In this document: piece after piece, positions 4,452 through 64,000 of the stretch
How the letters are laid out: every line of letters starts with the position of its first letter
Numbering within the stretch: position 1 is the stretch's first letter
DNA from: Blepharisma stoltei ATCC 30299
Taxonomy: Eukaryota > Protista > Ciliophora
Reading direction: 5' to 3'
Assembly: GCA_965603825.1 (NCBI GenBank)
Contig: CBFDEM010000054.1
Coordinates: 781,980-845,979, forward strand
DNA: 64,000 nt
Made by a program: the position numbers and the translations under genes
Notes under the pieces: model-generated
The model's database searches: none
Told to the model about the DNA's origin: nothing
The model's input: the letters and a program-made list of their open reading frames with translations, nothing else

Positions 4452-7334
4452 TTAATTAAGCCAATTATGTTGTCTTGCAACTCTATCAAAAGCTTCTTGA
4501 GCTTCTCCCAATGAATAATCAACATATGACTGATTCGGGTCCAGCTTAGCCCCTCCCTCCAACATATTAAATAAAATTTCAATAAAAATGCTCTCTACAG
4601 TTCTCACAGGAATCCACCCTGAAGGCGTCAAAGATTGCATACAAATAGACCCTCCGATCGTGACATGTCCAGTATGAAAAGCAAATCTTGGCCTCACAAT
4701 TCTTACAAAAGGAGGATTGAAAGGGAAATTTGCATCAAATCTGACCTCAAATAGAATTTCTTTTTCTCTGCCATAGCGCTTAGAATAGGCTTCAAATTCT
4801 TTCTGAAGGTCTTTTGGGATCTCAAATTGAGTAACATTAAGATGCACTTGCCATATATACATATTAGATCCTCCTTCAAATTCAGGAACTAAGCCTTTGC
4901 ATTCTTTGGATTTTAACAAATAGCGGTATTCTTGAAGGATCCTTTTATTTGATGTGGCAGATCCTTGCCCAGAAAACGCTTTTTCGATTTTTTTAATTTT
5001 TTCTTCAGCCTCTATGTCTTTTTGATTTTCATCAGCCCTTTGGACTTGAGGGGATTTTTGCTCCTCGAACATTTTTTGTGACCGATTCTCGGTTTGTGCT
5101 TTTTGCAAGGATTTTCTGATTGCTTCGTCAATGCGAGCTTTGCGGATTGATGCCTTTTTGGCTGCGAATGCTTTTTCAAACTTCTTTAAATGGTCTGTAA
5201 GCTCTAGATCGTTGGCATTAGCGTTTAATTTGTTGTAGTCGCTGGAGTTTCAGAGAAGTAGGTATCGGATAATCAGTTCTTTGTCGTTTTGGATTACGTA
5301 CACACCTCTGCCTGTATTGTAGTTTTTGTTGTTTTTAATAACTTCTATAATTGCCATGCAGCCAGTTGGAGGATTATGAAGGATGCCATAAGGCCAAATA
5401 GAACCTCCATCAGACATCCTTGAGTAGCCTAAAGATGTCCCCATATTTTCTGCACTATAAACTCCAGGCCCCGCAGCAGCCCCTGCAGTCATCATATGAG
5501 TATTACTAAGATTTCTGATCCCATTTCTTAAAATTGAGTACCAATTTTCTATAGCACTCCCATGAAAAGCAAAAAATGAGCCATGTTTTTGCTTAAGCCT
5601 ATTAAATTCCCTTTCAGCTTCAGGTGAATGGTTAGTCACAATATATTGCTGGATTCCCTCATCTAGTTTTTTAATTTTCCATTCTCCATCAAGTCTCACT
5701 AACGCTAGCCTATTAGTAGCAATAATATATCTAAGTAGTTTATAAGTCATCATAGAATTTTCTCCTATAAGAGTCGCCAAATAATCCCTCAAAGCCAGTT
5801 CATCTGAGCATTGGTCTTTCAGCATATGAGGGTTAGGCATCGACCTAAGAATTACTCTTAAATATTCAATGTCTTTATTATTGTCCATTTCTGATGTATA
5901 TTTTTGTCCTCCAGTTCTTGACAAGAATCCTGCCTTTCCTCTCATCTGCTCTTTTTTTAGCAAAAAACTAGGAAATGGTTCAAATACAGTTTGGGCTCGT
6001 GCTGAAGCTGCAGCTTCTGAGGCAAAGGAGAGGTCTAGCATTATTAAATTTATATTGTTTTTAAGCTCAGCGTATATAGAAAGCCCAGAAATTTCTTCAA
6101 ATCTAAATTCGCAGATCTCTTGGTTACAAGCGCGAAGCCTAATGGAGTCACAGTTATGCTTTTTATAGCAGATAAAGCAGTAATTCGTACAGTTTTGGAT
6201 GCGATCTCTCATATAGAATAGCATATTGTAAAAGAAGTTGTTGCAAGGGATGATAGCTTCAGCGAATTCTCCTCTATAGCTGCTAAAAACACCTGTATTA
6301 GCAATATCTAAAGCAGCGTCTAAGTCATTTTGAGAAAGCTGTAGCGCTTCTGTGGCCAGATCTTTAGGGAAACCCATAGTGACCATCTGCTTTACTAGAT
6401 TTTTATTGGCCGTTGTTTTATATTTTGCATTTTCTATACTATTTTCTCTAGACAAAGAAAGTGCTGAGCTTCCGCCTTTGCTTTTCATTGCATTATAAAC
6501 ATCGTCTCTATATTTTCTAACTCTTCCCAATATATATTCTCTGCAGCCATAAGAGTCCATTGACCCTCCTTGTAGAACCTCAAAGTTTAATGATCCTAAA
6601 AGAGCAGGAGTCCATTGTATTTCGTCCAAAGTCTGAATAATCCTATTATCGTTTATAGTAATACTTATGACTAAAGGAGACTCGTAGGTTAATTCTAGCA
6701 TAATCATAACACTGTCTGGGATATCCAAAAATGCCAAATCAATTTCTAGCCGAATATTGCTTAAGACCGGATTGTTGGTGATTTTACAGGAGTGGCGGAG
6801 GTCTGGGCAACTGTTAAAAGTCTCGTTTAAGAGTTCTACTGCTTCTGCAGCCTCTCTGAAGATAAAGTGGTTTTGAGCGAATTCAGGAAGACCTTGGAAA
6901 CTGGCGTCACTTTTTCCAGTTCTTTGAGCTGTTTTTACTAATCTTTCGTTTTCAGCTTCTATTATTTCATCATGGTAGTCTAAGTCCATTTCAGTATCAG
7001 AACCAAAGTCATTATCTGAGGCGAATTCTTTGTATTCTGAGTATTTATTGATTATTTTATCTAAAAACTTAGAAATCTGCATATCACCAGTAAGCAAATC
7101 ACTTGCACAATCTTGCAGAGTTTGGCTTGCCCATTCTATTCAGGATTTGATAGCAGAATTCTTAGAGCTTGAAGAAATCTCGAAATCTTCAAAATTAATT
7201 TTGATATATTGCTCGTCTAGTAGGAAATTTAGTCGTAAATTTTCAGCAGATTCAAAAGTTACAGGATAACTCAATGCTTCTCCGTTTTCTTCAAGCCAAG
7301 TGAAGAAAGACGTCATTAGGATATCATCATCCAT
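4452..7334 (-). CDS. 960-aa UBA + PARP6/8-like mono-ADP-ribosyltransferase + UBE2Q-like E2 fusion protein
   Basis: Three ORFs joined in frame through TGA at 7140 and 5250; UBA (MGFPKDLATEAL..NDLDAALD), Cys/His cluster, FHGS..NWYSILRNG, GPGVY, then PFNPPFVR..GHVTIGGSICMQSL..SGW. Confidence 0.9.
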
Positions 7335-7565
7335 TTTTTATAACTTCTATTTTATTAAATATATGTCTCTGCAATATCTAGGAATCTAAATCAATTAAAT
7401 TCTTTAAGAACGCATTTTCACTATTTCAGACCATTTCTAAGAACAAGATCTATTAAGTTTAATAAGTTAATGAAAAATAACGTAATTTAAAGGTATTATG
7501 TATTAATACTACGTTAATTTTCAAATAACTAAGATATTTATTATTAATATTGGCTAACATACTAA

Positions 7566-10500
7566 TTATTTACGATTAAGATTTTTTATACGTTCCTTCA
7601 CATCATTGATCGACACAGACTGATCTTCAGAAGACCCTGACTTGCTCAGCAAAGTATTCACCTTCGCTTTTAAGTCCGTCAGTGTAGTGCTCGTCTGGAC
7701 AGGCTGGTTATTTGAAAGTCCATATCTCTGCTTCATAAGTGCCAGCCTATTCTGGAAATCCTGGAAATTATAGCTTTCTGATGGAGGAGCATGCTCACTT
7801 TTTTCAGCTTTGCCTTCTTCTCTTAGTGCCCGCAAATCCTCAGCAATTTGGTTGGAAAGAGTCTTTGGGAGCTGGCTTAAAAGTGCTGAAAAATCAGTTT
7901 TCGAGTCTTTTTCTGTAAAATCAAAAAATTCTTTTATGGCTTGTGGGTAGGCAGATGGGTCATTTAATCTTGAAAGAATTGAGGAAAGGATAGGATCGTT
8001 GAACATTTTATTTTGTCTTGGAGACTGGGCGACCAAAGGCTTATTGGAGCTTGAAAGAATCATATTGATCCATCTTTCTATATTATTATCTGGCTCAGGG
8101 TGTTTTCTGACAGCCTCATACGACTGCCAGATATTTTCACCTTTTAGCTTTACAAGCTCATTTATGATAGTTTTTATCGTCTTAGTCCCCATTTCGTCTG
8201 AAGCTGGTGAAGCTCCACTCGTTGACCTATGTGTAATCAAATATTCATGCATCGCCAATAGTAATTCCTCAACTTGAATATTCTGCACAATATTTCCCAG
8301 AACTTTTGTCAATTTCAACAGACATCTGATTATCAAGCCAGGAATTTTAGGACATAAATCGTCATTTATATATCTCGTCAGCAGCTTTATTAATACCACA
8401 AACACTTGTGTAGGCTTTCCGTTTTCTAGAATTCTCAACATAGCGCCATTAAGAGTTTTTAGCATTGCTTCACCTTCTCCTTTTTCTCCGATTTTGTCTA
8501 AATCGTCTATAAGAAGTCTTTTTAAGATTTGTTCGGATAATTGGTATAAGGAGTTATCAGATAGCCGGATCATAATAGGTTTGGTGCAGCACATCTTTAT
8601 TACCACGCTTAAGAAGTATTTGGCGAACCTTAACGGGATAGTTTCAACTGGCCTCTCAAAAGTGCTGACCATTACTTTGCATAGAGCTTCAGTTAGAATA
8701 TTTGCTTTGTATTGGAGCTCTACCATATGAGATTCTTGCTCATTAATCATATAGTCATTTATAGCTACCAATGAGTCTACACGTGAACTCATATCTCCAT
8801 GCTTCAGGGTCTGTATATGATTATCTAGCTCGGTCAGGATTTCTGGCTCTGGCGCAGTCTCTTCTTCAATTACTTTTGCTTTGACTATTTCTGCTTTGTT
8901 TTCTATCTTTTCTACTACCTTTTGCCTTGGGATAATTTTTTCCTCAATTTTTGCCTCTTCGCCTACCTCTTCAGTTTCTATGAAAACCTGCACATCATTG
9001 TTTTGTGTAAAATTAGGAAATACAATTTCTTCTGGCTTTATAGTAATATTCGGCGAATTTGGCTTAAAATTGTTGTTTTCTTCTTCATTTTTTCTATATT
9101 TACTGTTATTTAGGGAGGTTCCTGAGATCACTTTGAATCTCTGTTCTAATAGATCTCTGACTTTGTCTGGGATGTCTCCTATGAGATTTCACACCTTGTC
9201 TCTGGTGTATTTATAGACTTCTCCGATAGTTCCAACAGCTGAGAGCCTTACATTGTTGTCTGGGCTGTTTACAAACTTCGCTATAGCTCTTATGTCTCTT
9301 GGCTGGGCTATGTTGGTGCCATATTCTTGAATAAGGCTTGATAATTCGTCAAGACACTCAACTTTGCTTCTGGTGTTTTTGGAATTAAGCCCTTGAAGAA
9401 CAGATAGAAACACTTTCTCAGGAGGATAAATTTTTGCTACATTGTGAATAATACTTCTCGTCATCGTCCTGAAAACTGCGTTATTATGTCCTGATTTTTC
9501 ACACAAAATTGGTAAAAATAGTGAGGCTTCTCCATCACTAAGTACAAATCCTTCAACTTGAAGCATGGACACTATTTGTATCGACAGTTCTAATATTGAC
9601 TTATATAGCTGCGTATTTGTTGTCTCAAAAAGTCTTACCCAAATGTATTTAAATATTAAATCTACCAGCTCAACCATTTCTTTTGGCTGTGTGTTTACCA
9701 AATTTGAGATATATTGGCATGCTTCAATCTGTTTTTTAAATTCAGAAGAAAACATCAAAGAGAACAAGTCAGCTGAAAAATTATTTTTTATTTGTTCCCT
9801 GAGCTTTTCCACAAACTCTTCTCTCAAATCATCGACTGTTCATTTATTTTTCAAATCTTGTTCAAGTCTTTTTTCTTTGTTTCCACTGCTCAGTACTGAA
9901 AAGTCTTGTGAAGGTATAAGATCGCCTCTTGAAGGACTTTTAGGAGGCTCCGCTTCAGCTGGTTTTGGATTTAGCTTTAAACGTGTGGGACGTGAATTTG
10001 CTTTTGAAGCCTTAGAAGCTTTTGAATTCGCTTGAGGCTCTATTTGAGGGGCCTCTGATATCACAACTGCAGGAGTTGTCCTATATTTATCCAAAATCAA
10101 GCACAAACTATTCATTACCGCCGGCTTCAGGTCTTTTAAGCATGGCTGGAATGCTTCCATTCCTATATAATTAATAACTTCTGCAAACAGCAGCTCAGTC
10201 GCATTTCTAATACTTGCGCTTCTATCTTGTAAACATGAAATTATTCCTGGGATCAGCAGCTTTAAGTCGCATTTAGGCAAGTTTTCCTTGTGGGCCAAGA
10301 GTCAGTTTAGCAGCTCAGTTCTAAGCTCAGGGTTATCTAAAGTTAAAGGGGTTGCACTATGGTTTATGATGTCTTCAGGGCCAACTTCTTGTGCCCATTT
10401 ATCAATAGAAGCAAGGGCTTCTTGTCTTAGCAAACTGTTTTTGTCTGATAAATTGGACAAGACGTTAGGGATGATTGCTTTGGAATAGACTTTTGAGTCA

Positions 10501-13340
10501 TTCCCCATAGCTTGTGCAAGCTTAGAAACTAATGCTAAACTTTGTCTGACGAGGGATTTATTTGGGTCATTCAGTCTTTCTTTTATAGCTTTTATTAGCT
10601 GCTCAAGTCCTGCTGGCAGAATCCTCATTCCGCTTTGGTCTAAGGACGCTTCTACCGCTTCCAAGCCTTCTTTCCTGATTTTCCAATTGGTGTCGCTGAT
10701 TTTCTTTAGAATGGCTGGAGTAATTGACTGAGAAATATTTGCCCTAGGAAAAGAAGCATCCAGCATTTTATTTGGGTCGATTTTGGACTCTTCTGAGCCT
10801 TTAATCTGCTTATAATTGGCTGTTTTTATGATTTCTGTCTTAGAAAAGTCTTCTTGTAAGACTTTCAGTGTGGCTTCTTTTATATCTGATATAAAAGGCA
10901 GGATTTTGTCCCCAATGTAACTGTAAATTTGGATAGTCAAGCTATGTGAAGCTTTTTTTATTATAGGGTTTGTTTGGCTTAGCCCAGATTTAGCATACTC
11001 AATGACTTCTTTTAAATTTACTGTATGAGCCCCGAATTCTCCTATAATTTTTCCTATAACAATGCAGCACTCTGAAACAACTTTAGGCTTATTGCAGTCA
11101 GATGTATTTTTTACAATCTGCCCTATCACAAATTTAGGCCCAAGGTCTTCACATAATGCTGATATACAAGTACTCAAGCTTTCTACAAGTTTATTATCAG
11201 AAAATTTATCCAATGCTAAAGAATTCAGTGCTATAACTCCTGACCTTTTTGTTATATTACAATTTTGTGCCAAATATGTTATCAATTCAAATGCTGCTTT
11301 ATTGACATTAAAATTATTTTCTTTTCAATCTTTTACAGTGCTTTTAATAAATCTTGATAAAGCTTCGTTGTTTTCTGATGCTACTGGAATGTTTGTAGAG
11401 GCCCATTCTTGAAGCAGCTGCAGGCCGCTTTGCTTTTCTTTCCAGGCGCTGTCTTTTAGTTTGGTAAATACCTCAGTAGGAATAAGGCTAGAAATAACAG
11501 TTTCAGCGTCTTCTGCTGAAATGGCTGTTCCTAATTCTTCTTCTCCTGATGGGGCTGATGGATTGTTTGTGGCCTGTCTTTGCAAAGCTGGGACAGGCTG
11601 GTTTTTAGGTTTACTCGCCGCTTTTGTAGGAGGCGGACTCTTTTCTCTTGGCTTTGGCTCATTTTCTTCACTGTTAGCAAACTTCGTGTCCCCAGCCTCC
11701 TCAAGCTTTTTCATTTTCGCAGGCGGCAAATCCCTAATAATTGGATTTATCACGTCAGGACACTTAATTAGTAGCGTATTCAGTACCTTAAATGAGGTGT
11801 TTCTCACCTCTAATGCACTATCATCTAAATTTTTCTTAAAAATAACTGCAATTCTGCTCGCTATTCTATTAACGACTTCATTAGGCTGTGTTGAAAAAAT
11901 CTTTTCAAGCCAAATCGATGCATTTATTTTTACTGATGGCGTCTTGTCTTCAAGCGCTTCTTTTATATCATCAAGGACCTGCTCCAAGCTGACACTATAT
12001 AAAAGATTGTCGAGCCCTATATGGGCTTCTTGTATTACCTGCGGCTTCTTGTCTTTGAATTTCATTATCATCATTGGGAAAAACTGCTTCGCAAAGCTAT
12101 CGAAATATTTTCGCTGGCCTTTGGCGAGCAAGCCTATAAGTCTCATAGCTTGGACCATCACATTTATATTGCTGTCGTTAAACAGCCTTTTCGCAAGTGT
12201 TGTAAGGGCAATAGGACTTTTTTCAGCAAGTTTAGGATAGTTTAGATCATTATTGAGCTCTTCGAGAGCGTTCTTTTTGTCGATCCATTTTTCCATTGCA
12301 AGCACAGACTCTGTTCATCTTTCATTATACTTGTTGAACACATCCTTTGCATCTGCCATGTCATAAATATCTATTGCAGGAGCAGGAGCTCTAGTACTGC
12401 TAGGTTTAGATTCCTCAATTTTAGGCTCTTGTCCCGCCATGTATCTGATTGGAATTGGAGGGTCAATGATATCTTCAAAGGCTTTTTCTAGCTCATCTTT
12501 TTGAGCTTTTTTAAGCTTTTCAACGCTAGACTTGATAAGTTCACGGACCCATCTATATGTTTCTTTATAAAAGTTTAGAGCTTCTCCTCTTACTTGGGCA
12601 TTGCTGACTGAAGCAAATTTTTCGATAATATCAATAAAAGGCTTATGAGAAAATGCTTTTACCCCAAAATTATTTATAAGCAAATTCACAGCAGAAATAG
12701 CTGCTGCTTGGATTTTGATATTTTTGTTATTTAAAGCTCCAATTAGTCCTTGAATGAATTTTTCTGTGTTATTGTTGTTATGTAAAGCATAGAAGTCAAG
12801 AAGGAAATTAGAGGATTTTTGTTTGATTTGCTGCTTGGCTGAGCTTAGTGCTTTTTCAATGAGGGTTCTCACTATTGTCTCGCTTTGAGAAATAATAAGA
12901 TCTGGTCGAGATGTATTATATACTGATAATATTTCTAATGCATTTTCCTGTACTCCTACATGTGAATCAGAAATAAATTTTGCCAGTTTGTCAGCATACT
13001 CTTCAAATGGAGGATCTGGGCTGTTTTTCAATAAATTCATTAATTCCTCAATAGCTTTCATTCTTGAATTTCATGATTTCGATTCCAATCTATCACTAAG
13101 CGGCCCGGTTTCCTCTTCTTTAGTCTCTTCTTCCTTAGGGAATTCTTCTAGAGAGAAGTTATAAGCTCCAGTCCCTCCTAAAGGTTTTTCATTTTGATCT
13201 TTAAATTGAATATCATCACTTGAAATATTATATGTTGAAGCGCCCTTCAGGGGAATTTCATCTATTGGTATAGAGCCAGCAAAATCTGATGAAATGCTGC
13301 GATTCTTGCTGCCAGATATGGGAATTTCGTCGTAAGACAT
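7566..13340 (-). CDS. CKAP5: XMAP215/ch-TOG microtubule polymerase, 1924 aa
   Basis: Seven in-frame ORFs separated only by TGA at 13071, 12315, 11325, 10302, 9840 and 9189; HEAT/TOG motifs SKSWNSR, KWIDKK, AWKEK, NWKIRKEGLE, FKKQIEA. Confidence 0.93.
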
Positions 13341-26670: not shown

Positions 26671-28167
26671 TTAAATTCGATTTGGTTCGCTTTCCTCTTT
26701 CTCTGACAGTTTATTTAGCATAAGCTCAGCAAATTCATCAAAATCGATTTCTCCGTCTCCATTAATGTCTGCTTCTTTGAGAATTTTTATAAAATCATAG
26801 TGGTTTCTTTCATTTCCTCCTAAAGACTCTTTTAAGTCGTCCAGCGATATTTTTCCATTGTTATCATTATCATAAATTTTAAAAACGTTGTAAAGCTTTT
26901 CTTTATTTAAACTTTTCCTCCAATCCATAGCTGCAGTCAAAAACTCTGTGTATTCTATATACCCATTGTTGTCTAAGTCACACTTCGCCATTAGCTCGTG
27001 GAGGTCCATCTTTATCACCTGATGGACTTTTTTAAAGCCTTTTTTCAGCTCCTCTTCACTTAGTTTTCCATCTCCATTTTCATCAAGTGACTGAAAAATC
27101 GACCTAAGCTGGGCTATTTCGGCGTTAGTTGATAAATGTGAAACTATAAACGTCAATGTCGCTTTTTGGAGCTTATTGCTGATATTAAAAGCTGCTAAGT
27201 TAATTAAGGATCGGGATATCGTTGGACTATCTTCAGTGGCATTTTGGGATTTTTGCTTAATCCATTCATGTTCTAAAATTTCGTCAATGCTAGGCCGTTT
27301 TAAAGGTTTTTTATTTAGCATCCATTTTATAAGGTTTTTGGCTTCTTTTGATATGCTATCCCAAGCTGGGTCTTTGAAAGAAATAGGCTTTTCTTGGATT
27401 TTTTCATATAAGGATCGCTCTGATTTAGCTTTGTACGGGACTAAGCCTGAGAGCATTATATATAAAAGGATGCCTAAGCTTCAGATATCACATTTATTGT
27501 CATAGCTGCCAGAAATCACTTCCGGAGCTGTGAAATAAGAAGTCCCAGTAAATTTTGTTAGCTTTTCATTTGGCTTTATAAATTGTGACTGTTTAAATCC
27601 AACCAATTTTAGCTTTGCGTCTGGACTATCATTTTCAAATAATATATTTTCAGGCCTTAAATCTCCATGGACCACACCAACTGAATGGCAATGATTAACA
27701 GCAGATAAGATTTCTTTCATAAATTTGGCAGCTTGAATTTCAGAAAAATATAGCATTTGGCCCATTTTTTCAAACAGCTCTCCTCCTAAGCACAGTTCTG
27801 TGACTATATGTAAATACAGTTGATCATGATAAACCTCATATACTTTAATTATATTTGGATGATCTAGTTTCTTCAGTACTTCAACCTCTTCTAATAGCTT
27901 ATCAATATCATGACTATCTTTGGTCCCAAGAAGAATAGACTTTACAGCTCTTTGTGCCCCAGTTTTTTTTTCCGTTCCTAATCTCACTTCATAAAACCCA
28001 CCGTCCCATAGTGTTTTGCCAAGCTCATAATTTTTTATGATTTTTTCTTCATGGAATTTGACAAAATCTTTAGCTTTTATGCTGATTTCTCCTTTTGATT
28101 TTCGTCTTAATCGGGAATTTTCTGGTTTTTTAACATCTTCTTCATTACTGCTACTACAGCAGCCCAT
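26671..28167 (-). CDS. CDPK-like probable pseudokinase with 4 EF hands, 498 aa
   Basis: MGCC start; Gly loop WDGGFY, HGDLRPEN, DFG replaced by GFK; DI[TGA]SLG joins the two ORFs. Confidence 0.88.
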
Positions 28168-28468
28168 ATTTTAATAATAAATCAATGATCAAATTTTTAG
28201 AATAAATTAATGAATTATTAAATTTTATTAAGAGATAAGAGCTTTTTAAGATTAAATTCTTTTATGCCATTTTCCGAATTTTTTAATATTATTAAGATCT
28301 GTTTATTGCTAATAGAAACTCTAAATGGTGTCTGAAATGGAAAATTGGACTATACCTTCTTACTACAGCAAATCTGTTATGAAGTTTTAGCTGAGTTTTC
28401 TGGCTACTTGTTTTAGTTGACCCTATTTCTGATGAAGGAGTTTTATCAATCTGCGCAAAATCAAGCCC
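27370..28468. repeat. Left copy of a ~1.1 kb direct segmental duplication (partner 33081-34180)
   Basis: Collinear high similarity across the CDPK 5' half, the divergent intergenic region and the LRR gene start. Confidence 0.9.
28325..28468 (+). pseudogene. Truncated, frameshifted 5' fragment of the LRR gene at 34038
   Basis: atggtgtctgaa..gaaaattggact matches 34038; small insertion; similarity ends at tcaagccc. Confidence 0.85.
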
Positions 28469-28965
28469 TGATCAAATTGATGCATCCTGTAGGTCACTTT
28501 GCCACAAGACATGAAACAATTTACAACTATAAGCAACGAAATTATGCAAGAAGAGCAGCTAGTTAACACTGGATTTCAGGAGTGGTATGCTCTTCAAGCG
28601 TATCAGTTAAACAACTGCTTATGAGAAGCACTTTAGCATCTCTAATTTATTTATCTAGGAGATTAGGAAAGGCGTATCTAAAAATTATCACTTATAATTA
28701 TGAACCTGCAAACGAGTTGCTTTCCAAAGGTGCAAATGCCAGTCGTGCATCATATTCAATTGAATATACTGGAATAGTCATCCAAATTCCGAGTTCATCC
28801 TTTTTTTAGATCGCTAAAATCGATTCCTTATGGTACTATTGACAATAAATCACTATATATTTATATCCAATAGTTTTATTCTTAAAATTAATAATAGATT
28901 TGGCTTAGAATTTGCATCTATGTGCTTGTTATGTAATTATTCATAGTCTTACTTATGCACGTTAT

Positions 28966-31900
28966 GTGAAGGGGAGTCGGGGTGTGGGGAGTGCCGGATC
29001 CCGATTATGCTTGGCCAAACCTTTTATAAAACCCAGAAATAGATCATAGTCATCAAGATAAAGAGCTCAACAAATTGTAAAGTCTTCATTTTTCATTCAA
29101 ATTACCATGGTAAACTCATTTAAGTTTTTGTGTCAAGCAAGTGATTTTAGGAAAATTGATAGATATTATCTTTTTTAAGGTTCAGAAAATTTTCAAGATG
29201 TATTAAATTAAAATTTCTTAAAAATAATCACTATAATTTAACTCAAATTATTAATTATAAAGGCTTTGACTATTAAAAATCGTATTTAATTAAAATTAGT
29301 AAAGCCCCATTTTATAAAAATGAATTTATTAGAAAGTCTGCACGCTTCAATTTCAAGTTTGAACCTAAATCAGGAATGTCCCTCTAAAATAGATTGCGCA
29401 ACTTCTAGCGGCATTAGTGATACGCTTGAATTACTTTACAATCGAAATATTCATGTATTAGACCTAGATGCTCATATTAGAAAATCTCCCGCCTTATTTG
29501 AACAATCTAATGTTGCGTTATTTTTAATATGAAATATAAAGGAACTCATACAAGCTGATGGAGGAGAACTTAAAAGGCCTATTGTTGCATTTTGGAAAAT
29601 ACAAAATACTGAGTTTCCAGAGCCTTCTAATTCAGAAACTCCAGATAATTCAGCTTGACATAATCTTGTGATTCTTCCCAAAAACCATGCACTAATTAAT
29701 GGGTGTTCGCTTGGAAATGAGCTAGAATTAATTTTTTCGATTGACTTATCAGGGAAAAAATTGCGTTTACCTACAATATTAAAATATTTGCTTAAAAGGG
29801 AGATTCAGTATTGAAATAATTTTGAAAAATGTACACTAGGGGGATTTTTTCCAAATTCTGATATCCATGATGAGTGTGATATTAAGATGTATGAGAATTT
29901 TTGCGAAAGTGGAATATGATGCTTATTCAACACTATAATGCTCATATCAAATGGAAATATTGCTTTCGCTGAAAATTTTAGAGAGTATGATCCCACTAAA
30001 AGCAGAAAATTAGGAGCTATTTTACAGAATTATGGAGTTGATTTATGCAAAAATCCAAACAATATTATATGCGAGGATTATCTAGAAAAAAACTGAATTT
30101 ATGATTTCACTATTGCAGTTTATGAAGGTTTGTTAAATGAAGTTTTAGAATGAGAAAAGCTAAGAAATAGCAAAGATATTGATTTAGAATGTCTTAATAT
30201 TAACCAACTCTGCACGCTTAATATGTTTAAAAAATCAAATTCATGGGAACTTGCCATCCAATTTATTAAAAATTGTGGAAACGCCGAGAACGAAATTAGA
30301 ATCAAAACTCCAACTAGTCACAAAAAGATTAAAAGACGTGTTAAGTCACCTAAAATACACCAATCTGCATTAAAAATCAAGGGAGAATATGAATATAAAT
30401 TCTCTCGAAGCACAATTGATCTTAAAGGTTTGGTTGATAGAAAAAATATTTTTATTGACAAAACGTTATTCATAAAAGAAATCTTAAATGATGGGTCTGA
30501 AGCAATTATGTTTACCCGGCCGCGTAGATGAGGGAAAACTTTTAATATGCATATGCTAAAGACATTTTTGCATCCAGATCAAAATGCTGATGGAAGCTTC
30601 AAAAACTTATATGTGTTTACTGGAGGGCATGATAACGTTGACCTTGAAAATCTGGATGAAACCAGATGCTTAAATATAATGACTGTAGATAATGGAAAAT
30701 ATAGAGAGTATGCTGGCACAATCCCAACAATTTTTTTAACTTTTAGTCATATCTCGGAACCAACTAAGCATGAAAAGTCAGAGTTTGATTATTATCTTAG
30801 AGGAATAAAAAATGCTATTCATTCAGCATACTGAAGCTGCAAAGAAATATATTGCCAATACTTATTAAGATTAGTTCGAAATTATTACACATACATATTA
30901 AGGACTGAATGTGATATTGAAATTCCTGATAAACTCGTTTTAGAATCAAAAGTAATAGAATTAGAATTAGCTTTGCCCTTTTGACTTGTTCAGTTTACAC
31001 GTTTTATAAATCATCCAGATGAAATTGATTTAAATAATGCTTTAATATATTTAGTTACGTTATTTATTGAGTTTTACGGAACAAAACCTTATGTATTAAT
31101 AGATGAATATGATGGACCTATTAATAAAGTGATAAATATAGAAGTTAAAAGAGAAATATTAATTTGTATGAGAGCGATTTTCCAGCCAGTAATCAAAGAC
31201 GGAATTGCTAAAAAAGTTATTTTAACTGGAATTTATGAGATTGGAAAGACGGATATGCTATCAGGTTTAAATAGTTTGATATCATATACAATTCAAAATG
31301 ATACAAATTATGCTAATTGCTTTGGATTCACTGAATCAGAAGTAAGTGATTTGCTTGATAATATTTTATTCGCTGAAACAGAAGAGGATCTTATAGAGCA
31401 AAAAGAACTGATTAAGGAATGATATAATGGATATAACATTGGAATCCATAAAATTTACAATCCATGATCTATTATGAATTGTTTGGGAGCTGCTGCACAA
31501 AAAAGTCAGAATCCACTTCAACCTTATTGAATTAATTCAGGTGGTTTCAATCAATTAATTTTACTGTTTGATAAAGTTGAGAATTATGATAAATTATTTG
31601 AATTAATGAATACTGGATACCTTATATTCGAAGAGGAAATCGAAAACCAGATAGAACTAAATTATAATGAAAATGATAGTGATTACAATAAAAGCAATAC
31701 ATTTGATGATTTTTTAGCGATATTGCTCCATGCTGGATATTTGACAAAAGCTAGTGCTGATAAAGCAAATCCGAACTCTTATCGCTATATTATTCCTAAT
31801 AAGGAAGTTAAAAAGAGTTTTTATACATCATTACTTACATCTTGAATGAAGAAAAAAATGAGTCAAAATAAAATTGATAAAAGCAAGCCAATTGAATTTA

Positions 31901-33080
31901 TTCAATTTTTAGAAGATGGCAAATCACTCCAAAATCTCTTTCAAGAAAAAGTGCTTGATAAAATGAATGATTTTACTGATAAAACGGAGGAAGATTTTAA
32001 ACTGTTAATAGGGTCGATATTTAGAATAGCTTTACTTGAAATGAAATGCCCTACATACAAGATGCACGCAGAAAGTGCTAATGTGCACGAGAAAAAATTG
32101 GACCATATTTTTCTTCCTATCAAGAATGAAAGCTCTACAGTGATAATACACGAGTATAAAAAATTAGATTCAGCAAGTCATGAGCAAGCCCAAGAAAGGG
32201 TAGATGATGCGCTATGGCAAATTTATGCAAAAAAATATATGGAAATTGGTTTAAATTTATACGATGATATACATCATAAGCATTTTAAAAACTTTATTAT
32301 TCGAGGAATTGTGTTTTATAAGCTCGGCCTTGGAGATGTATGGAGTATCCTTATAAAGGAACATAAAATAACAGTTGATATGGCAAAAAAACTAAATTAT
32401 TTATTTAGCTCTCAAGATGGTGGAGTATTACCTAATCATTCGTTGTTAAGTGGAGAAAATTCCAATAGAGAGGCTAAAATTAATGCGAGAGGCACTCTAT
32501 GCAGCAGCCTAGACAGCTTAATAGAAAATATGCAAAGACTAGACTTTTTTAATCATTTAAATTATAAGAAGGCTGAAGAAATAGAAAATTGTAAAAGACA
32601 AAGAAACCCCGATCCAAATGAAATAGGGCATGAGAATAAAAGGAAAAGATAAAGAATGGTGTAAATAATATTTCTTAGAATAATTAACTGAATACATTAC
32701 TGTGCCATAATTTTCAAATACATCTGATTTTCTAATAATTAGGTTTTGCTTTAGTTAAGATTTAGTTTTATCTTTAAAATAAAATATTCATAAATTCGAT
32801 AATAAGTTTCTTAAGAGAAAACAAAATGTACGAAAAGTCAGGAAAATTGAAGAGGCAATGGATGATCCAAAATTTGAAAAATAGGCACTGTGGCTTGCCT
32901 GTTTAAGCTCAATAATTTTCACTTTGCTATATTCTCCATGAATTCAATGAACTAGGTCCTGGATTTCCACTATTCTAATCAGTCATCAAGTATTCAGTGC
33001 TTATGCTTAGCTTTTTCAGTTGGATAGCTTGCCTCATGGCCAAACATAAAACCCAGTCCTACCCCTTGCTCCCCCTCTCA
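28966..33080. mobile_element. Candidate mobile/effector element carrying an NTPase-nuclease gene, with imperfect terminal repeats
   Basis: G-rich left motif (28966-29036) and C-rich right motif (33036-33080) are related in inverted and direct orientation; the right motif abuts the duplication breakpoint; no DDE transposase seen. Confidence 0.45.
29320..32652 (+). CDS. 1110-aa protein: unknown N-domain + AAA-ATPase-like (PF09820-type) + PD-(D/E)XK nuclease (PDDEXK_9-type)
   Basis: One frame with 13 TGA=W; FIDKT, FTRPRR[W]GKT (Walker A), VLIDEYDGP (Walker B), LTGI..SGLN, FGFTESEV, WYNGY, IYNPWSI, AGYLT, IPNKEV, LDHIF..IIHEYK, ALWQI..KKY. Confidence 0.9.
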
Positions 33081-33878
33081 GTCTTTAAAAGAAATAGGCT
33101 TTTCTTGGATTTTTTCATATTAGGATTGCTCTGATTTAGCTTTGTACGGTACTCAGCAACAGAGCATTACATATAAAAGGATGCCTAAGCTTCAGATATC
33201 ACATTTATTGTCATAGCTACCAGAAATCACTTCCGGAACTGTGAAATAAGAATTCCCAGTAAATTTTGTTAGCTTTTCATTTGGCCCTTTTAATTGTGAC
33301 TGTTTAAGTCCGAACATTTTTAGCCTTGCGTCTGGACTATCTTTTTCAAATAAAATATTTTCAGGTCTTAAATCTCATTGGACCATACCAACTGAATGGC
33401 AATGATTAACAGCAGATAAGATTTCTTTCATAAATTTGCCAGCTTTATTTTCAGAAAAATATAACGCTTGGCCCACTTTTTCAAACAGCTCTCCTCCTGA
33501 GCACAGTTCTATGATATATGTAGATACAGTTGATCATAATAAACCTCATATATTTTAATTATATTTGGGTGATCTAGTTTCTTGAGTACTTCAACCTCTT
33601 CTAATAACTTATCAATAGAATGGCTATCTTTTGTCCCAAGAAGAATAGACTTTACAGCTCTTTGTGCCCCAGTTTTTTTTCCCCCGTTCCTAATCTCACT
33701 TCATAAAACCCAACATCCCACAGTGTTTTCCCAAGCTCATAATTTTTATGATTTTTTCTTCATGGAATTTGACAAAATCTTTAGCTTTTATGCTGATTTC
33801 TCCTTTTGATTTTCGTCTTAATCGGGAATTTTCTGTTTTTTTAGCATCTTCTTCATTATTGCTAGTACAGCAGCCCAT
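33081..33878 (-). pseudogene. Truncated, frameshifted copy of the CDPK-like gene at 26671-28167
   Basis: MGCCTSNNEED.. start; several indels; no EF-hand half. Confidence 0.9.
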
Positions 33879-34180
33879 ATTTTAAATATAAATCGATGAT
33901 TAAATTGTTAGAACAATCTAATGATTTATTTAAATTTTATTAAGAAATAAGAGCTTTTTAAGATTAAATTCTTTTTAGGCCATTTCCCGAATTTTTTAAT
34001 ATTAATAGGATCTGTTTATTACTAATAGAAACTCTAAATGGTGTCTGAAGTCGAAAATTGGACTTTACCTTCTCTACAGCAAATTTGTTATGAAGTTTTA
34101 GCTGAGTTTTCTGGCTACTTGTGTGAGGTTGACCCTATTTCTGATGAAGGAGTTTTATCAATTTGTGCAAAATCAACCCC
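33081..34180. repeat. Right copy of the ~1.1 kb direct segmental duplication
   Basis: Matches 27370-28468. Confidence 0.9.
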
Positions 34181-43318: not shown

Positions 43319-43871
43319 ATTTTATTATAGATTTTCTAACTTATTTTTCATATGCCTTCATAACTTAGCTCATTAAGTCTTTTTGAAGAACCACAAAGTT
43401 CTCAATATGAAGGAAGATTATAAATAATATAAAAGAAGTATATTATAATTTCTCTTATAAAATGCTGAACTATTTGGCGATTTTCCTCTCTCATTAGAGG
43501 AAAAATGAGATTTCATGCATTAAAATCTGTTTGGCTTACTCAAAAGCTACTTCTTGCAGAGGTATTCAAGGTAAATATGCATAAATCTCTTTCCTAAAAT
43601 AAGAAGTTCTAAATGCTCAAACTTTGTATCTGTTATCAAAATAAGAAGCCAAAAAAATAATATAAAGTGGCGAAAAATTGATCTTGCTGCACCAAAAAGT
43701 TGGCAAATGACCTCATCAACTATTTCCAAAAGATTTTGTAATCACCCAGAATAACCCAATTTTTTATATTGAGATTTGATGTGCATATTTGTCCTCGTAA
43801 CATTTTATGATATTTTTCTATCATTTTGTGTTGCTTTTATTTCATTTTCTATCTTCAACATAATTAATAAA

Positions 43872-45206
43872 ATGGCATTTGGGAGATTTGAAAAGTGGCA
43901 AGCTTTTATATTCTTTCTGACTTTTCTATGTATGGCATCAAGACATGTCTGCTTAGAAAGCTACTACATAGTGAAACCGGAAGTTCACGACTCTATGGGA
44001 TTTTCAACAACATGGCTAGGAGCCATGGACGCAACTTACCTATTCTTTTATGCAATGGGGAACTTTTTATGTGGGTCACTAGGAGATAATATTCCGCTTA
44101 AATATGTAATTTCTGGAGGAATGACACTCACTTCCTTCGGCTATGCAGTGATATCAATGCTTGGATATGTAGAAGCAAAGTACCCATTCTTATTTATTGT
44201 AATCTTTGCCTTTGTAGGTGTTTTCCAATCAGCAGTATGGCCTGGGACTGTTGCAGTCATGGGGAATTGGTTCTCGAAAACGCATAGAGGCAAAGTCATA
44301 GGCATATGGAGTTCTGGTGGGTTTGTTGGGGATATTCTTGGAGCTCAGCTCGGCTCTTTATTAGTTTCCCAAGCGGGCTTTGCATGGGAATCAGTAGTAT
44401 TATCAGCCGCAATAATTTTGGTATGTGTTGCAATTTTATTCTATTTTGTCTCAAAAGAAAAACCGGGGCCTGAATTTGAGCCAGCAGATAAGTCATATCA
44501 ACTAGTAGAGAATGGAGAGGAATTGCATGAAGATGGCCCTAAGAAGAAAAAAGGAATTTCCTTTTGGAGGGCTTGGACACTTCCAGGAGTCTTAGTTTAC
44601 TCTTTTACTTATGGATGTGTCAAGATGCTCAATTACTCAATGATTATGTGGCTACCTTACTTTTTAGACAAGCATATTGATGTCAGTAAAAGCTTGATTG
44701 GCACTATGGCAAATTTCTATGATTTAGGAGCACTTATAGGAGGGTTTGGAATGGGATGGGTTACTGATAAACTTGGAATTAGGGCACCTTTTGTAAGCAT
44801 TCTATTGTTTTTAGCACTTCCAACGTTAGGTATTGTTCACCTTATGACTCCTGGGCTCTGGTGGATGTTTTTCTTTATAAACATATTACTTGGGATTTTT
44901 ATTGGGGGAGCAGATATATTAATTGCTGGGGTTATTTCGACAGATTTAGGCAAAAATGAGCAAATTAAGAATGAAGAAGCTTTGGCAACAGTAACAGGGA
45001 TCATAGATGGAACTGGAGGTGCTGGAGCAAGTCTTGGACAAGTCATTATTGGAGTTCTAGCTCTTTGGAGCTGGGATTTAGTGTTTGGATTTATGTTTTG
45101 CATTGGACTTTTAGGATTAGCCCTTCTAGCCAAGTATTCTATACGAGACGTAAAATTTTATATGCAGCAAAAAAAGCTTGGAGTGAAAGTTGCAAGCGGT
45201 ATTTAG
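43872..45206 (+). CDS. MFS sugar-phosphate exchanger (SLC37/GlpT-like), paralogue 1
   Basis: About 12 TM; FQSAVWPGTVAVMGNWF..RG, WLP, TVTGIIDGTG; no TGA codons. Confidence 0.92.
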   Translation: MAFGRFEKWQAFIFFLTFLCMASRHVCLESYYIVKPEVHDSMGFSTTWLGAMDATYLFFYAMGNFLCGSLGDNIPLKYVISGGMTLTSFGYAVISMLGYVEAKYPFLFIVIFAFVGVFQSAVWPGTVAVMGNWFSKTHRGKVIGIWSSGGFVGDILGAQLGSLLVSQAGFAWESVVLSAAIILVCVAILFYFVSKEKPGPEFEPADKSYQLVENGEELHEDGPKKKKGISFWRAWTLPGVLVYSFTYGCVKMLNYSMIMWLPYFLDKHIDVSKSLIGTMANFYDLGALIGGFGMGWVTDKLGIRAPFVSILLFLALPTLGIVHLMTPGLWWMFFFINILLGIFIGGADILIAGVISTDLGKNEQIKNEEALATVTGIIDGTGGAGASLGQVIIGVLALWSWDLVFGFMFCIGLLGLALLAKYSIRDVKFYMQQKKLGVKVASGI

Positions 45207-45784
45207 TAAATTCTCACTCATTAAAATAATAATAAAATCTAATAAATATTGATTCTTGAAGTAGTAACTATCCTAGTCTTCTCATTTTCCAATAAAGAAC
45301 AAGTTAAATAATTGCATAAAATTATGATATGCCAGATTATCGTAATTCTAAAATATAAGCAGCATAAGATGCTCAAGCGTGTTGTTTGAGATTTAGAGCT
45401 ACAATTGATTCACTGAATTACAAGCTCATTAGATCAATTTCTTACTGCTATAGTAATCATAAATTGCATTTATTAAGTACAGGATTGCCTCTTTATATTT
45501 ATTAAATATGATCTTTGACAGATAAATTGTTTTTAACCAACAAATATCACACTAAAACCAAACTTAACAGACAATATAAAGTTGTGATAAATTAATCTGT
45601 TAATTGAGGCTTTTACATATACAACTAGCTAAAAATTATTTTAATCAGTTTGTTTTTGCTTAGACTTTAGCTCTATCCGGTACACCTTAGCTTAATTGTA
45701 AGACTTCATCAAACCTACCTCTTAATAATCTCATTTATTATGTTGCTGCTTTTAACTATTGCATTTTCTAATATATTACTAAAA

Positions 45785-47122
45785 ATGGTATTTGGAAGTT
45801 TTGAAAAGTGGCAAGTTCTGACATTCACTTTGACTTTTCTATGTATGTCGTCAAGGCATATCTGCTTAGAGAGTTATTTTATAGTGAAGCCAGAAGTTCA
45901 CAACTCTATGGGATTTTCTACAACATGACTGGGAGCAATGGATGCTACCTATCTGTTCTTTTACGCACTTGGGAATTTTGTGTGTGGATCATTAGGGGAT
46001 AACATACCACTTAAATACGTAATTTCAGGAGGAATGGTACTTACATCTTTCGGCTACGCATTGATATCAATGCTTGGATATGTTGATGCAAAATACCCCT
46101 GGCTATTTATTATAATTTTTGGCTTTGTCGGAGTTTTTCAGTCAACAGTATGGCCTGGGACAGTTGCAGTGATGGGAAATTGGTTCTCGAAAACACATCG
46201 AGGCAAAATAATAGGCTCATGGAGCTCTAATTCATTTGTTGGAGATATTCTTGGAGCTCAGCTTGGCTCCTTATTACTTTCCCAAGCAGGCTTTGCATGG
46301 GAATCAGTTGTGATATCAGCTGCAACAATCTTGCTCTGCGTTTCAATATTATTCTATTTTGTCTCAAAAGAAAGACCAGGCCCTGAATTTGAACAAGTGA
46401 AAAAATCAATCCAATTAGTTGAGCCTGGAGAAGAAATGTTTGAAGAGGCTCCTAAGAAGAAAAAAGGCATTTCTTTCTGGAAAGCCTGAAAACTTCCAGG
46501 TGTTACAGTTTATGCTTTAACTTATGGGTGTGTAAAGCTACTTAATTATTCAATGATTATGTGACTGCCCTACTTTTTAGACAAGCATATTGATGTCAGC
46601 ACAAGTTTAATCGGGACAATGGCAAATTTCTATGACTTAGGAGCGCTTTTTGGAGGGTTTGGAATTGGCTGGGTTACTGATAAACTTGGGATCAGAGCCC
46701 CTTTTGTATGCATTATGCTGTTTTTAGCGCTCCCTACTCTAGGCATTATCCAGCTGATGACTCCTGGGCTTTGGTGGATGTTTTTTATAATAAATATCTT
46801 TCTTGGCTTTTTTATAGGAGGGTCCGATATATTGATTTCTGGGGTTATCTCAACTGATTTAGGTAAAAACGAGCAAATTAAGAATGAAGAAGCTTTAGCA
46901 ACAGTAACAGGGATCATAGATGGAACTGGAGGTGCTGGAGCTAGTCTTGGACAAGTCATTATTGGAGTTCTAGCTATTTGGAGCTGGGATTTAGTATTTG
47001 GATTCATGTTTTGCGTTGGGGTTTTAGCAGTAACCCTTCTACTCAAGTATGCTATACGAGATGTGAAACTTTATATACAGCAAAAAAAGCTTGGAGCAAA
47101 AGTTTTAAGTGGAGTTGAATAA
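45785..47122 (+). CDS. MFS sugar-phosphate exchanger, tandem paralogue 2
   Basis: Collinear with paralogue 1; TGA at 45926, 46487 and 46562 align to TGG. Confidence 0.92.
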
Positions 47123-47650
47123 ATTCTCACTTTAATAAAATTCAGTAAGATTTATTAATATTTTTCCTTGTCATAAGGGTTTAATTAAAACGATCCTCTT
47201 TTATGTATTGGGCTATAATTAAAAGCTATCTCTATTGAGCGCTTTATGGCCTAATTTATGGATTAATCATAAATTGCAAACGAGGCCCAAAACGATTGAA
47301 ATATTGATCTCCATATTAAGACGATAATAGAAAGCACTGTCTTTAATAGTTCTATCCATAACCTGAGACTGCCTATAAAATCTTTATATTTTAGTAAATT
47401 TTGGATAAATCTAGAAAATTAGCTGTTTTTTATATTTTCAGATTATTTGACAACAGAATTTTGAATTTTCTGAGATCAACTATTACTCTCTGATAAATTT
47501 CAATATGAAATTTACTAATAAAATTATCGATGCTATCTGTGCCGATACATATGATGCTTTATTTTCTTCATATTCTCTTCTAATCTCTTAGATCTTAAGC
47601 CAAAGATATTTTCAGCTTAAATCAATAAGCTTATCATAAATTAATATCAT

Positions 47651-54958: not shown

Positions 54959-55536
54959 TGGGTATTTTAAAAGTCTAATTGTATAATTTTTTTTTCAACA
55001 AAATGAAATAGGAAATCAAATTTTTCTGATAGAGATAAATCATGATATTCTTCAAGACAATAGATATTTCTGTTAAAATAGATATAGTTTTTAAGTTAAT
55101 AATTCATGGTTTGCAATTAATATCAGTCTATATTTTAGATTGCCAGTTCAATTTAAGATACTATAACTATCAGAAGCAGATGTCTTTCATTAATTTGTCA
55201 TTTTCCTTTAAATATGTAACTATAAATAAATAATAAATATTATTATGTAAAACTGCTATTTATTGACAAATTCATGCCAATTTTAAATTAAAGTTATTTT
55301 TTTAATATTATTTTGCTAATAGAAAAGAATAGTTTAAAAATCAGTAAAAATAACGAATTAAAAATATACTAGTGAATTCTCGTACCCAGATTGCAATTAT
55401 TTGACTTTAAAATTTCTATTTATCAAGCTAACTCAGAAGCTTGGTTTTCACCCAAGCAAAATAATTCATCACTTGGAATTTGAGTAATGCATGCGATATA
55501 GTTTAATAATTCTTGAATTTTCATTTTTTAATAAAT

Positions 55537-56835
55537 ATGCTCAGCGGTCGATGCTTCAAAGATGGGTGTGCAAATAGACTTCATGGAAAGTGTGAATGTG
55601 ACGGCATCATCCTATTTTGCAAAAAGCACAGCTTTGAGCACTTAGAAAAATCAAGTTCTAAAGGGCATCAATTAATAAGACTTTTCCCCAAGCCAACAGA
55701 AGAAATCAATTATCCAATCATCAAGAAACTAAAAGAACTCAAAAAAGATATCAAAAAATACAAAATTGAGGCAATAAAAAACGCAAATAAAATCATAAAG
55801 AATTTTAATTCTGCTTTTGAAAAATATGTTTGCCAGATTAATGAGGCAGAAGCAAGATGCAATAAAATGCTTAAAATTATTTATAGTGACTTTGACTTAG
55901 CTACTGAAGGCGAGATAGAGAGTGTGCTTAAACTTAACATTTCAGACGCTCAGCGTGAGATGGCTGGATGAGATATAAAAGAGTGCTACTTGGACTATAA
56001 AGATATAAATGTAGCAATTAGAAATACTTATGAAATACCTTTTAATCCTTTTAGAAAACCTTTAGAGGATGTCATTGAATCAAGTGAGCTTTCGTATTTT
56101 ATGCATAATACTTCGGATTTTGCTACTATAAACTTAGAAAACTTCCAAATTTCTTCTAAAGTAACTCTTCCAACTCAAGAACCAATTCACGGATACACTA
56201 GAAGCTGTATACTTCCTGATCATTCTTATTTTTATTGCTGTAGTCCAAACAATAGATCAGGATTAACATTTATAATTGACAAAAATAAAAACGTGAAACT
56301 GCTGAGAAAATCGAAAAATAATTACTTAGCTGATCCTATCTTTTTTTTTAATAATTTTATCTATTTAATTGGAGGGTAGAATAAATTGGCAGAAAGGTAT
56401 AATTTTAAACAAAACTTATGGGAAAGTATGGCTCCACCACCTCAGGATTTGGATTTTACACTTAGCTGCAAGACATTATATAGAGATTCGATTCTTATAA
56501 CAAGCTATTTTATCCAAAAAATGATTATTTATAGCATAATTCAAAATAAATACCAAGAAATCCCAAATCTGGTGTTAAATGCAAATTATCATAAATTTAT
56601 GTTGAAAGGAAACAATAGAGTTTATTTATTTGAGAAAGGCGGAAGGATTTTCGAAAGCTCTGAAAACAATATTTTAAGTTGGAATCAACTTTGAAATAAT
56701 AACCTTCCAAATAATAACCCACTTCAATCAAGTGCTGTTCAGTATAAATGCTGCCTTTATTTCGTTCATTATAAAAATGAACTGTGGAAATTTGATCTTG
56801 CTTCTAAGCGAGTTTCTCAGGTAGCAACTTTCTAA
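55537..56835 (+). pseudogene. Cys/His Zn-finger + coiled-coil + Kelch-like gene, copy 1, one premature TAG
   Basis: CFKDGC..CEC..FCKKH..H; IYLIGG; TAG at 56377-56379 aligns with CAG in copy 2. Confidence 0.7.
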
Positions 56836-57506
56836 ATAAAGAGTTTTGCACTTTAATAAATCATTATCCTTTATCCGAAAAAAAGTTGGATAATTAATCT
56901 GTTAGCTCTTATACTATTTATAGATTATCTATTTTGCTAAGATTTTGCTATTAAGATCTCAGCAATCCAAAGAATTAGAGACTTTTTATATTCTATTTTT
57001 CTTTAAGCTTAAGATATCTTATATCTCCTATCAAAATCTAATTAAAATTCTTAATTTTGCTGAAGAAATCCTTGGATGAAATTTGATAGAACAGATAATA
57101 ATCCATTCAAAATTCTAGTAGTTTGTTCACTGTGGAGCTTTCAGAGTGTTTGCTAATAAAAATTAAACACCCTTTTGCTAATTATACCAATAAAGAGGCA
57201 TTTTAGCAATAATTTGATAATATGCAAAGCATTGAATTAAAAAGTAGGATATAAATAATTACCTATAAAAACTTAGAGCATTTATTTTAATTAATAAAAG
57301 AGAAAAATATGCCTTTGTTGGATGTTAAGAATCTAATAGGAAATATAAGAGTAAGAGCATAAATATGATAGCATAATCAGGGTTATAATCTTTCTCTGAG
57401 AGAATAAAATTCGATTAAGTAAAAAAAATAGTGAATTGAATAGCTTAAAACTGGACTATTTATTGCTAAATCTTTAAATTAAATAAGCCATTATGATTCT
57501 ATAATT

Positions 57507-63900: not shown

Positions 63901-64000
63901 TAGGGTGTTAGGGTGTTAGGGTGTTAGGGTGTTAGGGGGGGTGTAGGGTGTTAGGGTGTTAGGGTGTAGGGTGTTAGGGTGTTAGGGTGTTAGGGTGTTA
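60925..64000 (+). repeat. Telomere (TGTTAGGG)n, about 384 units, G-rich strand running towards the end
   Basis: Near-perfect 8-nt tandem array; the complement CCCTAACA is the Stentor/Blepharisma telomere unit. Confidence 0.99.

Follow-up and report, generated by a model that had tools for sequence, protein, structure and literature searches.

A conjugation-induced family of bacterial-type NTPase and nuclease genes in the ciliate Blepharisma stoltei

Genes that join a PF09820 nucleoside triphosphatase (NTPase) to a PF08011 nuclease form the DUF1703 family, which is expanded in Cardinium cCpun (PMC6387759), and PF09820 also occurs in anti-phage systems (PMC10952713). The CifB nucleases are proposed to descend from a class of NTPase and restriction endonuclease (REase) proteins that includes Medea1 of Tribolium (PMC11342252; PMC6387759). 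The function of this class, tied to Medea and a proposed source of the CifB nucleases, has so far been hard to test. A gene of related architecture lies in a 64,000-nucleotide stretch (the window) of Blepharisma stoltei ATCC 30299 (assembly GCA_965603825.1, contig CBFDEM010000054.1, positions 781,980 to 845,979), a ciliate whose macronuclear genome reads UGA as tryptophan and carries CCCTAACA telomeres (PMC9942806). A preliminary description of the window had proposed a horizontally acquired, bacterial-type NTPase and PD-(D/E)XK nuclease gene; it missed an N-terminal CE-clan domain, a tail resembling a nuclear localization signal (NLS), a family of more than 20 loci, heterotrich-like homologs and induction at conjugation. 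It is highly probable that the family consists of bacteria-derived NTPase and nuclease genes, and at the RNA level it is silent in vegetative cells and on from 2 h of conjugation.

29320..32652, + strand: whole gene, 1110 amino acids with UGA read as tryptophan, intronless (BSTOLATCC_MAC22254 / Contig_58.g1450)

The gene is a single frame of 1110 codons that ends at a TAA stop and is open only when TGA is a sense codon. RNA-like contigs of a single study (four runs; their RNA nature was guessed by the tool) span approximately 29274-32705 without gaps, joints or letter changes, so that tiny introns are excluded and the TGAs remain in the transcript. The earlier fusion of open reading frame fragments into one intronless frame was thereby borne out, and two candidate explanations of the TGAs, their removal by tiny introns and pseudogene status, were rejected. 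The gene is not hidden by its UGA codons, as had been stated, since the public annotation already contains the full 1110-amino-acid protein; Contig_58.g1450 was matched to the focal gene by its 3333-bp coding sequence and its neighbors g1436 (SPT16) and g1448 (a 1491-bp CDPK). The RNA-like contigs gave zero coverage at 28000-28393, and they cover a broken CDPK half-copy (32948-33835) but not the start of the intact CDPK (28000-28170).

29377..30054, + strand: CE-clan (Ulp1/C48-like) protease-fold domain, amino acids ~20-245, predicted inactive (paralog model, motif alignment)
30055..30384, + strand: variable helical linker, amino acids ~246-355, fastest-evolving part (nonsynonymous to synonymous rate ratio, dN/dS, of 0.5-2.8 in close paralog pairs, short and noisy)
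30424..31257, + strand: PF09820 AAA-ATPase-like NTPase, amino acids 369-646 (hidden Markov model (HMM) match and motifs)
30517-30540, + strand: Walker A motif RPRR-W-GKT, amino acids 400-407
31096-31113, + strand: Walker B motif LIDEYD, amino acids 593-598
31387..31827, + strand: helical/winged-helix region with weak likeness to the archaeal STAND-type ATPases PAB2304 (Z 5.4) and SSO1545 (Z 4.5)
31969..32379, + strand: PD-(D/E)XK nuclease with E890, E918, D928, E945, K947, Q967 and Y973 (structure model and near-invariant columns)
32593..32649, + strand: C-terminal bipartite NLS-like motif, amino acids 1092-1110, the last 19 residues (ad hoc pattern)

The full protein matches PF09820 at 76.5 bits against a curated cut-off of 26.1, and the Walker A, Walker B, nuclease D/E/K and ALWQI..KKY motifs (the last at amino acids 964-973) named in the preliminary description were all located. 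A model of amino acids 690-1080 (pLDDT 90.9) consists of a winged-helix-like region and a PD-(D/E)XK domain, a restriction-endonuclease fold in which D928, E945 and K947 form D...E-x-K; its top structural matches are mostly PD-(D/E)XK nucleases, and the best matches of the nuclease domain are the nuclease-like domain of Wolbachia CidB and CinB (Z 8.4 and 8.3; Foldseek E 3e-3). A sequence search of the PDB returned no match. The domain is predicted to be a metal-dependent DNase. The N-terminal fold was assigned via an AlphaFold model of the paralog L011, which shares 47%, 45% and 31% identity with three pieces of the focal protein. This model matches OtDUB (Z 13.3, root-mean-square deviation 3.4 over 155 residues), RickCE (Z 12.2) and the deubiquitinase (DUB) domain of CidB (Z 11.6); its top 29 VIA matches are all CE-clan or related, and Atlas look-alikes of the domain include Peptidase_C48 clusters. 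The catalytic triad of the focal domain is incomplete: Ala112 replaces the His, Ser197 replaces the Cys and only Asp142 is retained. Neither the His nor the Cys is kept in any Blepharisma copy examined, although both are present in the outside homologs P0114, P0119, P0308 and P0144. The focal CE domain is thus predicted to be catalytically dead. The NLS-like pattern was found in 9/10 Blepharisma proteins, 9/19 proteins of the eukaryote-associated clade described below, 8/20 of the bacterial clades and 1/22 generic bacterial DUF1703 proteins, and the tail would be expected to direct the protein to the nucleus.

When 1.84 billion proteins were searched with a profile, the same three-domain protein was found on environmental contigs, and four of these relatives lie among eukaryotic genes in the standard code. 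One adjoins a ribosomal uS5 gene that is 84% identical to a cluster containing Stentor coeruleus and 74% identical to Blepharisma; this relative from a Stentor-like ciliate retains the catalytic His and Cys of the CE domain. No family protein of S. coeruleus itself turned up in the protein searches. In a tree rooted on more distant bacterial DUF1703 proteins (a chosen subset, with L001 and fragments omitted), the Blepharisma proteins (support 100/98) fall in a eukaryote-associated clade (96/98) nested within bacterial clades (97/96 and 97/95) whose gene neighbors include Tn3, insertion sequence (IS) and resolvase genes, and an approximately unbiased (AU) test rejects the non-nested tree (p 0.0002). 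Below the eukaryote-associated clade, the deeper branches have genes for Tn3, IS, resolvase and PIN proteins as neighbors; they are followed by plasmid genes of Rickettsia and Ca. Megaera and by genes of Alphaproteobacteria and Cardinium. Only generic DUF1703 genes, at identities of 37% or less, were returned when GTDB was scanned with P0003. Read from the sequences, the phylogeny supports an old horizontal transfer from endosymbiont-type mobile DNA, in line with the horizontal origin and long residence in the host that the preliminary description had put forward and with the phylogenetic check it had called for; there may have been repeated transfers.

Two relatives deserve separate description. 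In a plasmid gene of Rickettsia asembonensis (L093:2821-5166), a SocA/Panacea antitoxin domain is fused to PF09820 and PF08011 next to a patatin gene, which suggests that the N-terminal slot is able to hold an antidote. In a river-metagenome contig (L033:2484-6188 and 6366-11760), a clade member, translated with X at four stops, has an intact CE motif different from the focal type and four in-frame TAA/TAG codons, with no TGA or frameshift. The contig also contains a second CE-like gene, decayed IS1- and relaxase-like fragments and an intron-bearing malectin-like gene in which TAR apparently encodes Gln. It possibly represents endosymbiont DNA inserted in a code-6 ciliate in which the stops could be read through, and the position of the clade member next to bacterial-type relaxase and IS fragments in decay points to gene traffic that has continued.

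The count of 13 TGA against 4 TGG among the tryptophan codons of the focal gene, given in the preliminary description, is correct and had led to the proposal of a code-4 donor. Such a donor, if the transfer was recent, or else contamination by a symbiont contig would account for a TGA share above both the genome-wide 36% (44,087 TGA vs 78,535 TGG, bioRxiv 10.1101/2023.10.09.561518; binomial p 0.0008) and the 26% of the neighbors. A code-4 donor is unnecessary because the host itself reads UGA as tryptophan throughout its genome. The code is visible within the window, where the second paralog of a major facilitator superfamily (MFS) transporter carries TGA at the site of a TGG in the first. SPT16, CDK1 and the first MFS paralog do lack TGA, as had been noted, but 12/19 other frames in the window use it (37 TGA vs 108 TGG). 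The focal TGA share equals the A-ending fraction at the gene's own Lys, Glu and Gln codons (0.76); the paralogs average 52% TGA, a difference that is not significant (Fisher p 0.07), and TGA and TGG alternate between them at homologous tryptophan columns. Furthermore, the relatives outside Blepharisma are full-length under genetic codes in which TGA terminates translation, and the gene is surrounded by eukaryotic genes on a telomere-capped contig. Both a code-4 donor and contamination were therefore rejected, the alternative being largely refuted and extremely improbable. The UGA use of the focal gene is ordinary for Blepharisma, and the inferred cause is that selection for TGG, the cognate codon, has relaxed in this weakly expressed family; the TGA fraction does not correlate with GC content at third codon positions across the genes of the window.

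Expression of the focal gene was 0.13 reads per kilobase per million (RPKM) in starved cells, 0.36 after gamone treatment and 0.20 at 0 h, and 9.2, 11.0, 11.7, 8.5, 17.9, 12.5, 8.4 and 6.8 RPKM over 2-38 h of conjugation (bioRxiv 10.1101/2021.12.14.471607 Data S3). This amounts to a 54-fold induction (rank 129 by own count in Data S3), with 9.2 RPKM reached at 2 h, the onset of meiosis, and the peak of 17.9 at 22 h. Among the entries listed, nine more PF09820 gene models within the top ~205 of Data S3 are up 35-104-fold, and the domain name appears at least 22 times in the upper part of Data S3. Compared with hand-picked genes over 2-38 h, the focal profile tracks NUF2 (r 0.89) and a RecQ helicase (r 0.86) and is unlike a late PiggyBac homolog (r -0.18). 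The text of the preprint does not mention the family genes, and literature searches found no description of them. In the same data, a cluster of ubiquitin-pathway genes (Contig_22.g1555-g1570; E1, E2, UCH) displays sharp common peaks at 18 h and 26 h.

A search of the genome (41.46 Mb, 64 contigs; family frames were first searched as stop-free pieces with X at TGA) identified more than 20 family loci on about ten contigs, several of them tandem arrays. About 11 copies are open over 1030-1110 codons (two of these only across the fetched extent), at least 11 carry stops or frameshifts, and the focal protein shares 27-40% identity with other members. Catalytic residues are retained in 9-10/11 copies. 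Over the whole length, the dN/dS ratio in close paralog pairs (Nei-Gojobori, without confidence intervals) is 0.4-0.76; for the nuclease it is 0.23-0.53, and for the short linker it reaches 2.8; the family is under purifying selection, the result of a comparison that the preliminary description had suggested. Three further loci stand apart: L001 (G000:C22:337165-337719) is a short PF09820-only gene without nuclease or TGA and unlike other members, L031 (G000:C56:427280-427546) is the sole PF08011 match in the genome, part of a separate 250-amino-acid protein up 8.6-fold in conjugation, and a broken N-terminal paralog (G000:C15:587182-587765) shares upstream sequence with the focal gene.

Timing and selection both bear on the possibility that the gene is a domesticated developmental nuclease, which clears meiotic products that are not selected, somatic micronuclei or the old macronucleus, or processes DNA in micronuclear divisions. 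Expression from the onset of meiosis with a peak at 22 h, covariation with kinetochore genes, the NLS-like tail, purifying selection and the homolog in a Stentor-like ciliate agree with such a role; half of the copies are dead, however, identities to the focal protein are low, dN/dS is only moderately reduced at 0.4-0.76, the Blepharisma copies are a separate expansion and the searches yielded no S. coeruleus protein, which makes domestication unlikely. A similarly low probability is assigned to an innate-immune effector, an NLR-like chain of sensor, switch and nuclease in which the dead CE domain would act as a decoy to effectors of symbionts or viruses and which would be brought into play at cell fusion, when parasites can cross. 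Although the layout of sensor, STAND-like NTPase and nuclease, the occurrence of PF09820 in anti-phage systems and the diversified paralog arrays suit this explanation, the genes are essentially silent in vegetative cells, the stage of infection, variability is not greatest in the N-terminal domain, and no anti-phage system model of PADLOC matched.

The surroundings of the gene contain a direct duplication, which explains the decayed neighbors of the preliminary description.

27370..28468, no strand assigned: left copy of a 1.1-kb direct duplication, with the intact 5' CDPK half, intergenic DNA and a broken leucine-rich repeat (LRR) gene start (sequence comparison)
33081..34180, no strand assigned: right copy, 92% identical, with a broken 5' CDPK half, intergenic DNA and the start of the intact LRR gene
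28652..28866, no strand assigned: ~210-bp repeat within the 4.6-kb segment, found elsewhere in four copies of 83% identity

Each copy holds one intact and one broken gene, and between them, with sharp junctions, lies the 4.6-kb segment (28469-33080) with the focal gene. Either an insertion whose repair left a long duplication or a tandem duplication followed by a deletion would fit the arrangement. Since the focal gene is far older than the 8% divergence of the duplicate, it probably moved recently to its present site. Its frame stayed intact through the divergence that broke both flanking half-genes: at the divergence of the dead CDPK half, and assuming residence since the duplication, a neutral frame would be stop-free with p 0.0006-0.006 and carry 6-13 frameshifts. 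Thus, of the earlier suggestion that an intact frame beside decayed neighbors reflects selection or recent mobility, selection stands and mobility is probable, and the decayed neighbors are the dead halves of the duplication. The same expectation and assumption weigh against a near-neutral passenger, a formerly active element that decays by copies and is expressed only via an inherited meiotic promoter, as do the conserved catalytic residues and dN/dS below 1; the broken copies, some of them still induced, the tryptophan codons at mutational equilibrium and the loss of the CE triad speak for a passenger, which overall is quite improbable. A transposon with terminal inverted repeats was rejected, no terminal repeats having been found. 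Of the four other copies of the ~210-bp repeat, C11 and C33 hold one each, and C16 holds an inverted pair separated by about 400 bp. Elsewhere in the window, an MFS transporter pair (82%; 43838-47170) and an unknown-gene pair (77%; 55531-58824) are further local tandem duplications, and 60927-64000 (about 3 kb) is made up of TGTTAGGG telomere repeats, among them occasional variant units.

The reading favored here is that of an NTPase-gated nuclear DNase that acts in germline conflict of a Medea- or CifB-like kind during sex, a tentative proposal put at somewhat less than an even chance. It is preferred over the rivals on account of copy turnover, arrays, relocation and kinship to CifB and Medea1. 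The gene was very probably acquired long ago from endosymbiont-type bacterial mobile DNA and has since been recoded into the host code, and the family has been enlarged by birth and death in heterotrich ciliates. The protein would enter nuclei by its C-terminal NLS, where the dead CE domain might bind ubiquitin- or SUMO-marked chromatin, or restrain the enzyme, rather than cleave, and nucleotide exchange would turn the nuclease on. Cuts in germline DNA during meiosis and nuclear exchange could then favor the element, either by harming nuclei without it, as in Medea and CifB, or by provoking breaks whose repair copies the element.

Several observations count against this proposal. The tree was built under LG+G4 with no mixture model, and most members of its clades have no taxonomic label. 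The structural scores of the nuclease are modest (Z about 8), and the PF08011 HMM, a nuclease profile search of the kind the preliminary description had envisaged, did not match the focal protein. Neither terminal inverted repeats nor a transposase were found near the gene. No antidote gene is visible, as spacers around the focal gene and in the arrays (short flanking DNA was examined around the paralogs) measure less than about 0.9 kb; for an adjacent cifA-like gene in linked DNA, no long open reading frame was found in the 0.85 kb before the insert or in the 0.43 kb after it. Many host genes are also up in conjugation (SPT16 20-fold, the neighboring CDPK 16-fold), as are broken family copies, and the timing may therefore stem from an inherited promoter.

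The wider generalization, that heterotrichs carry host-encoded, CifB- and Medea-related nuclear nucleases from endosymbiont mobile DNA as drive or incompatibility factors at meiosis and nuclear exchange, with a dead ubiquitin/SUMO protease as sensor or safety catch, is possible but rather doubtful. If true, a protist would possess a toxin system of reproductive conflict, and the family would be a living link to the ancestor proposed for CifB. The importance of the family lies in its conjugation-specific induction and this testable link to reproductive toxins, not in its UGA codons: B. stoltei is culturable, with synchronized mating, a homozygous genome, an RNA time course and about 11 intact meiosis-induced copies.

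Compared with known systems, the focal protein shares with DUF1703 proteins the order of an NTPase followed by a PD-(D/E)XK nuclease with a Q-x5-Y helix, as well as lineage-specific expansion, but it is twice as long and has a CE-clan domain at its N-terminus, an extension at its C-terminus and the NLS-like tail; its nuclease is too diverged for PF08011, and the gene is nuclear, in a ciliate. With regard to the hallmarks of the Medea1 class (CR-REase7/CR-NTPase8), a His close to the conserved Glu and a second Glu on strand 1, E890 and E918 are present, and the column that holds His in generic DUF1703 proteins is Gln in the clade and Lys in the focal protein. Among proteins that combine PF09820 with a CE domain, P0144 comes from a bacterial context beside a Tn3 transposase and shares the domain order of the focal protein while keeping the His and Cys motifs; its CE domain is undetected by the Blepharisma CE profile, so that the fusion of CE and PF09820 may have multiple origins. 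The plasmid protein of Ca. Megaera polyxenophila (WP_282487221.1; L095:2078-5011) has PF09820, a degenerate nuclease and a RickCE-like domain that is C-terminal and has the His and Cys motifs. OtDUB of Orientia and RickCE of Rickettsia have the fold of the focal N-terminal domain, which differs in lacking the catalytic His and Cys. By its published description, Tribolium Medea1 (DUF1703, or CR-NTPase8 plus CR-REase7, CR denoting Crinkler) is likewise a bacterial-type NTPase and nuclease gene in a eukaryotic nucleus with reproduction-linked timing, from which the focal gene differs by the absence of a composite Tc1 transposon, the dead CE domain and its multigene family. Wolbachia CifB proteins (CidB, CinB) supply some of the best structural matches to both the nuclease fold and the CE domain, and the window of activity or expression is tied to sex in both. 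However, the focal protein has a single nuclease domain after an NTPase, whereas CifB has tandem REase domains and no NTPase, and the focal gene is host-encoded without an adjacent CifA-like partner; to judge from its residues, the focal CE domain is N-terminal and dead and the nuclease appears active, the reverse of CidB. Crinkler effectors differ in their ubiquitin-like header, in place of which the focal protein has a CE-clan fold. The family is thus a variant of the NTPase and REase conflict class, distinct from CifB and from Crinklers and outside PF08011.

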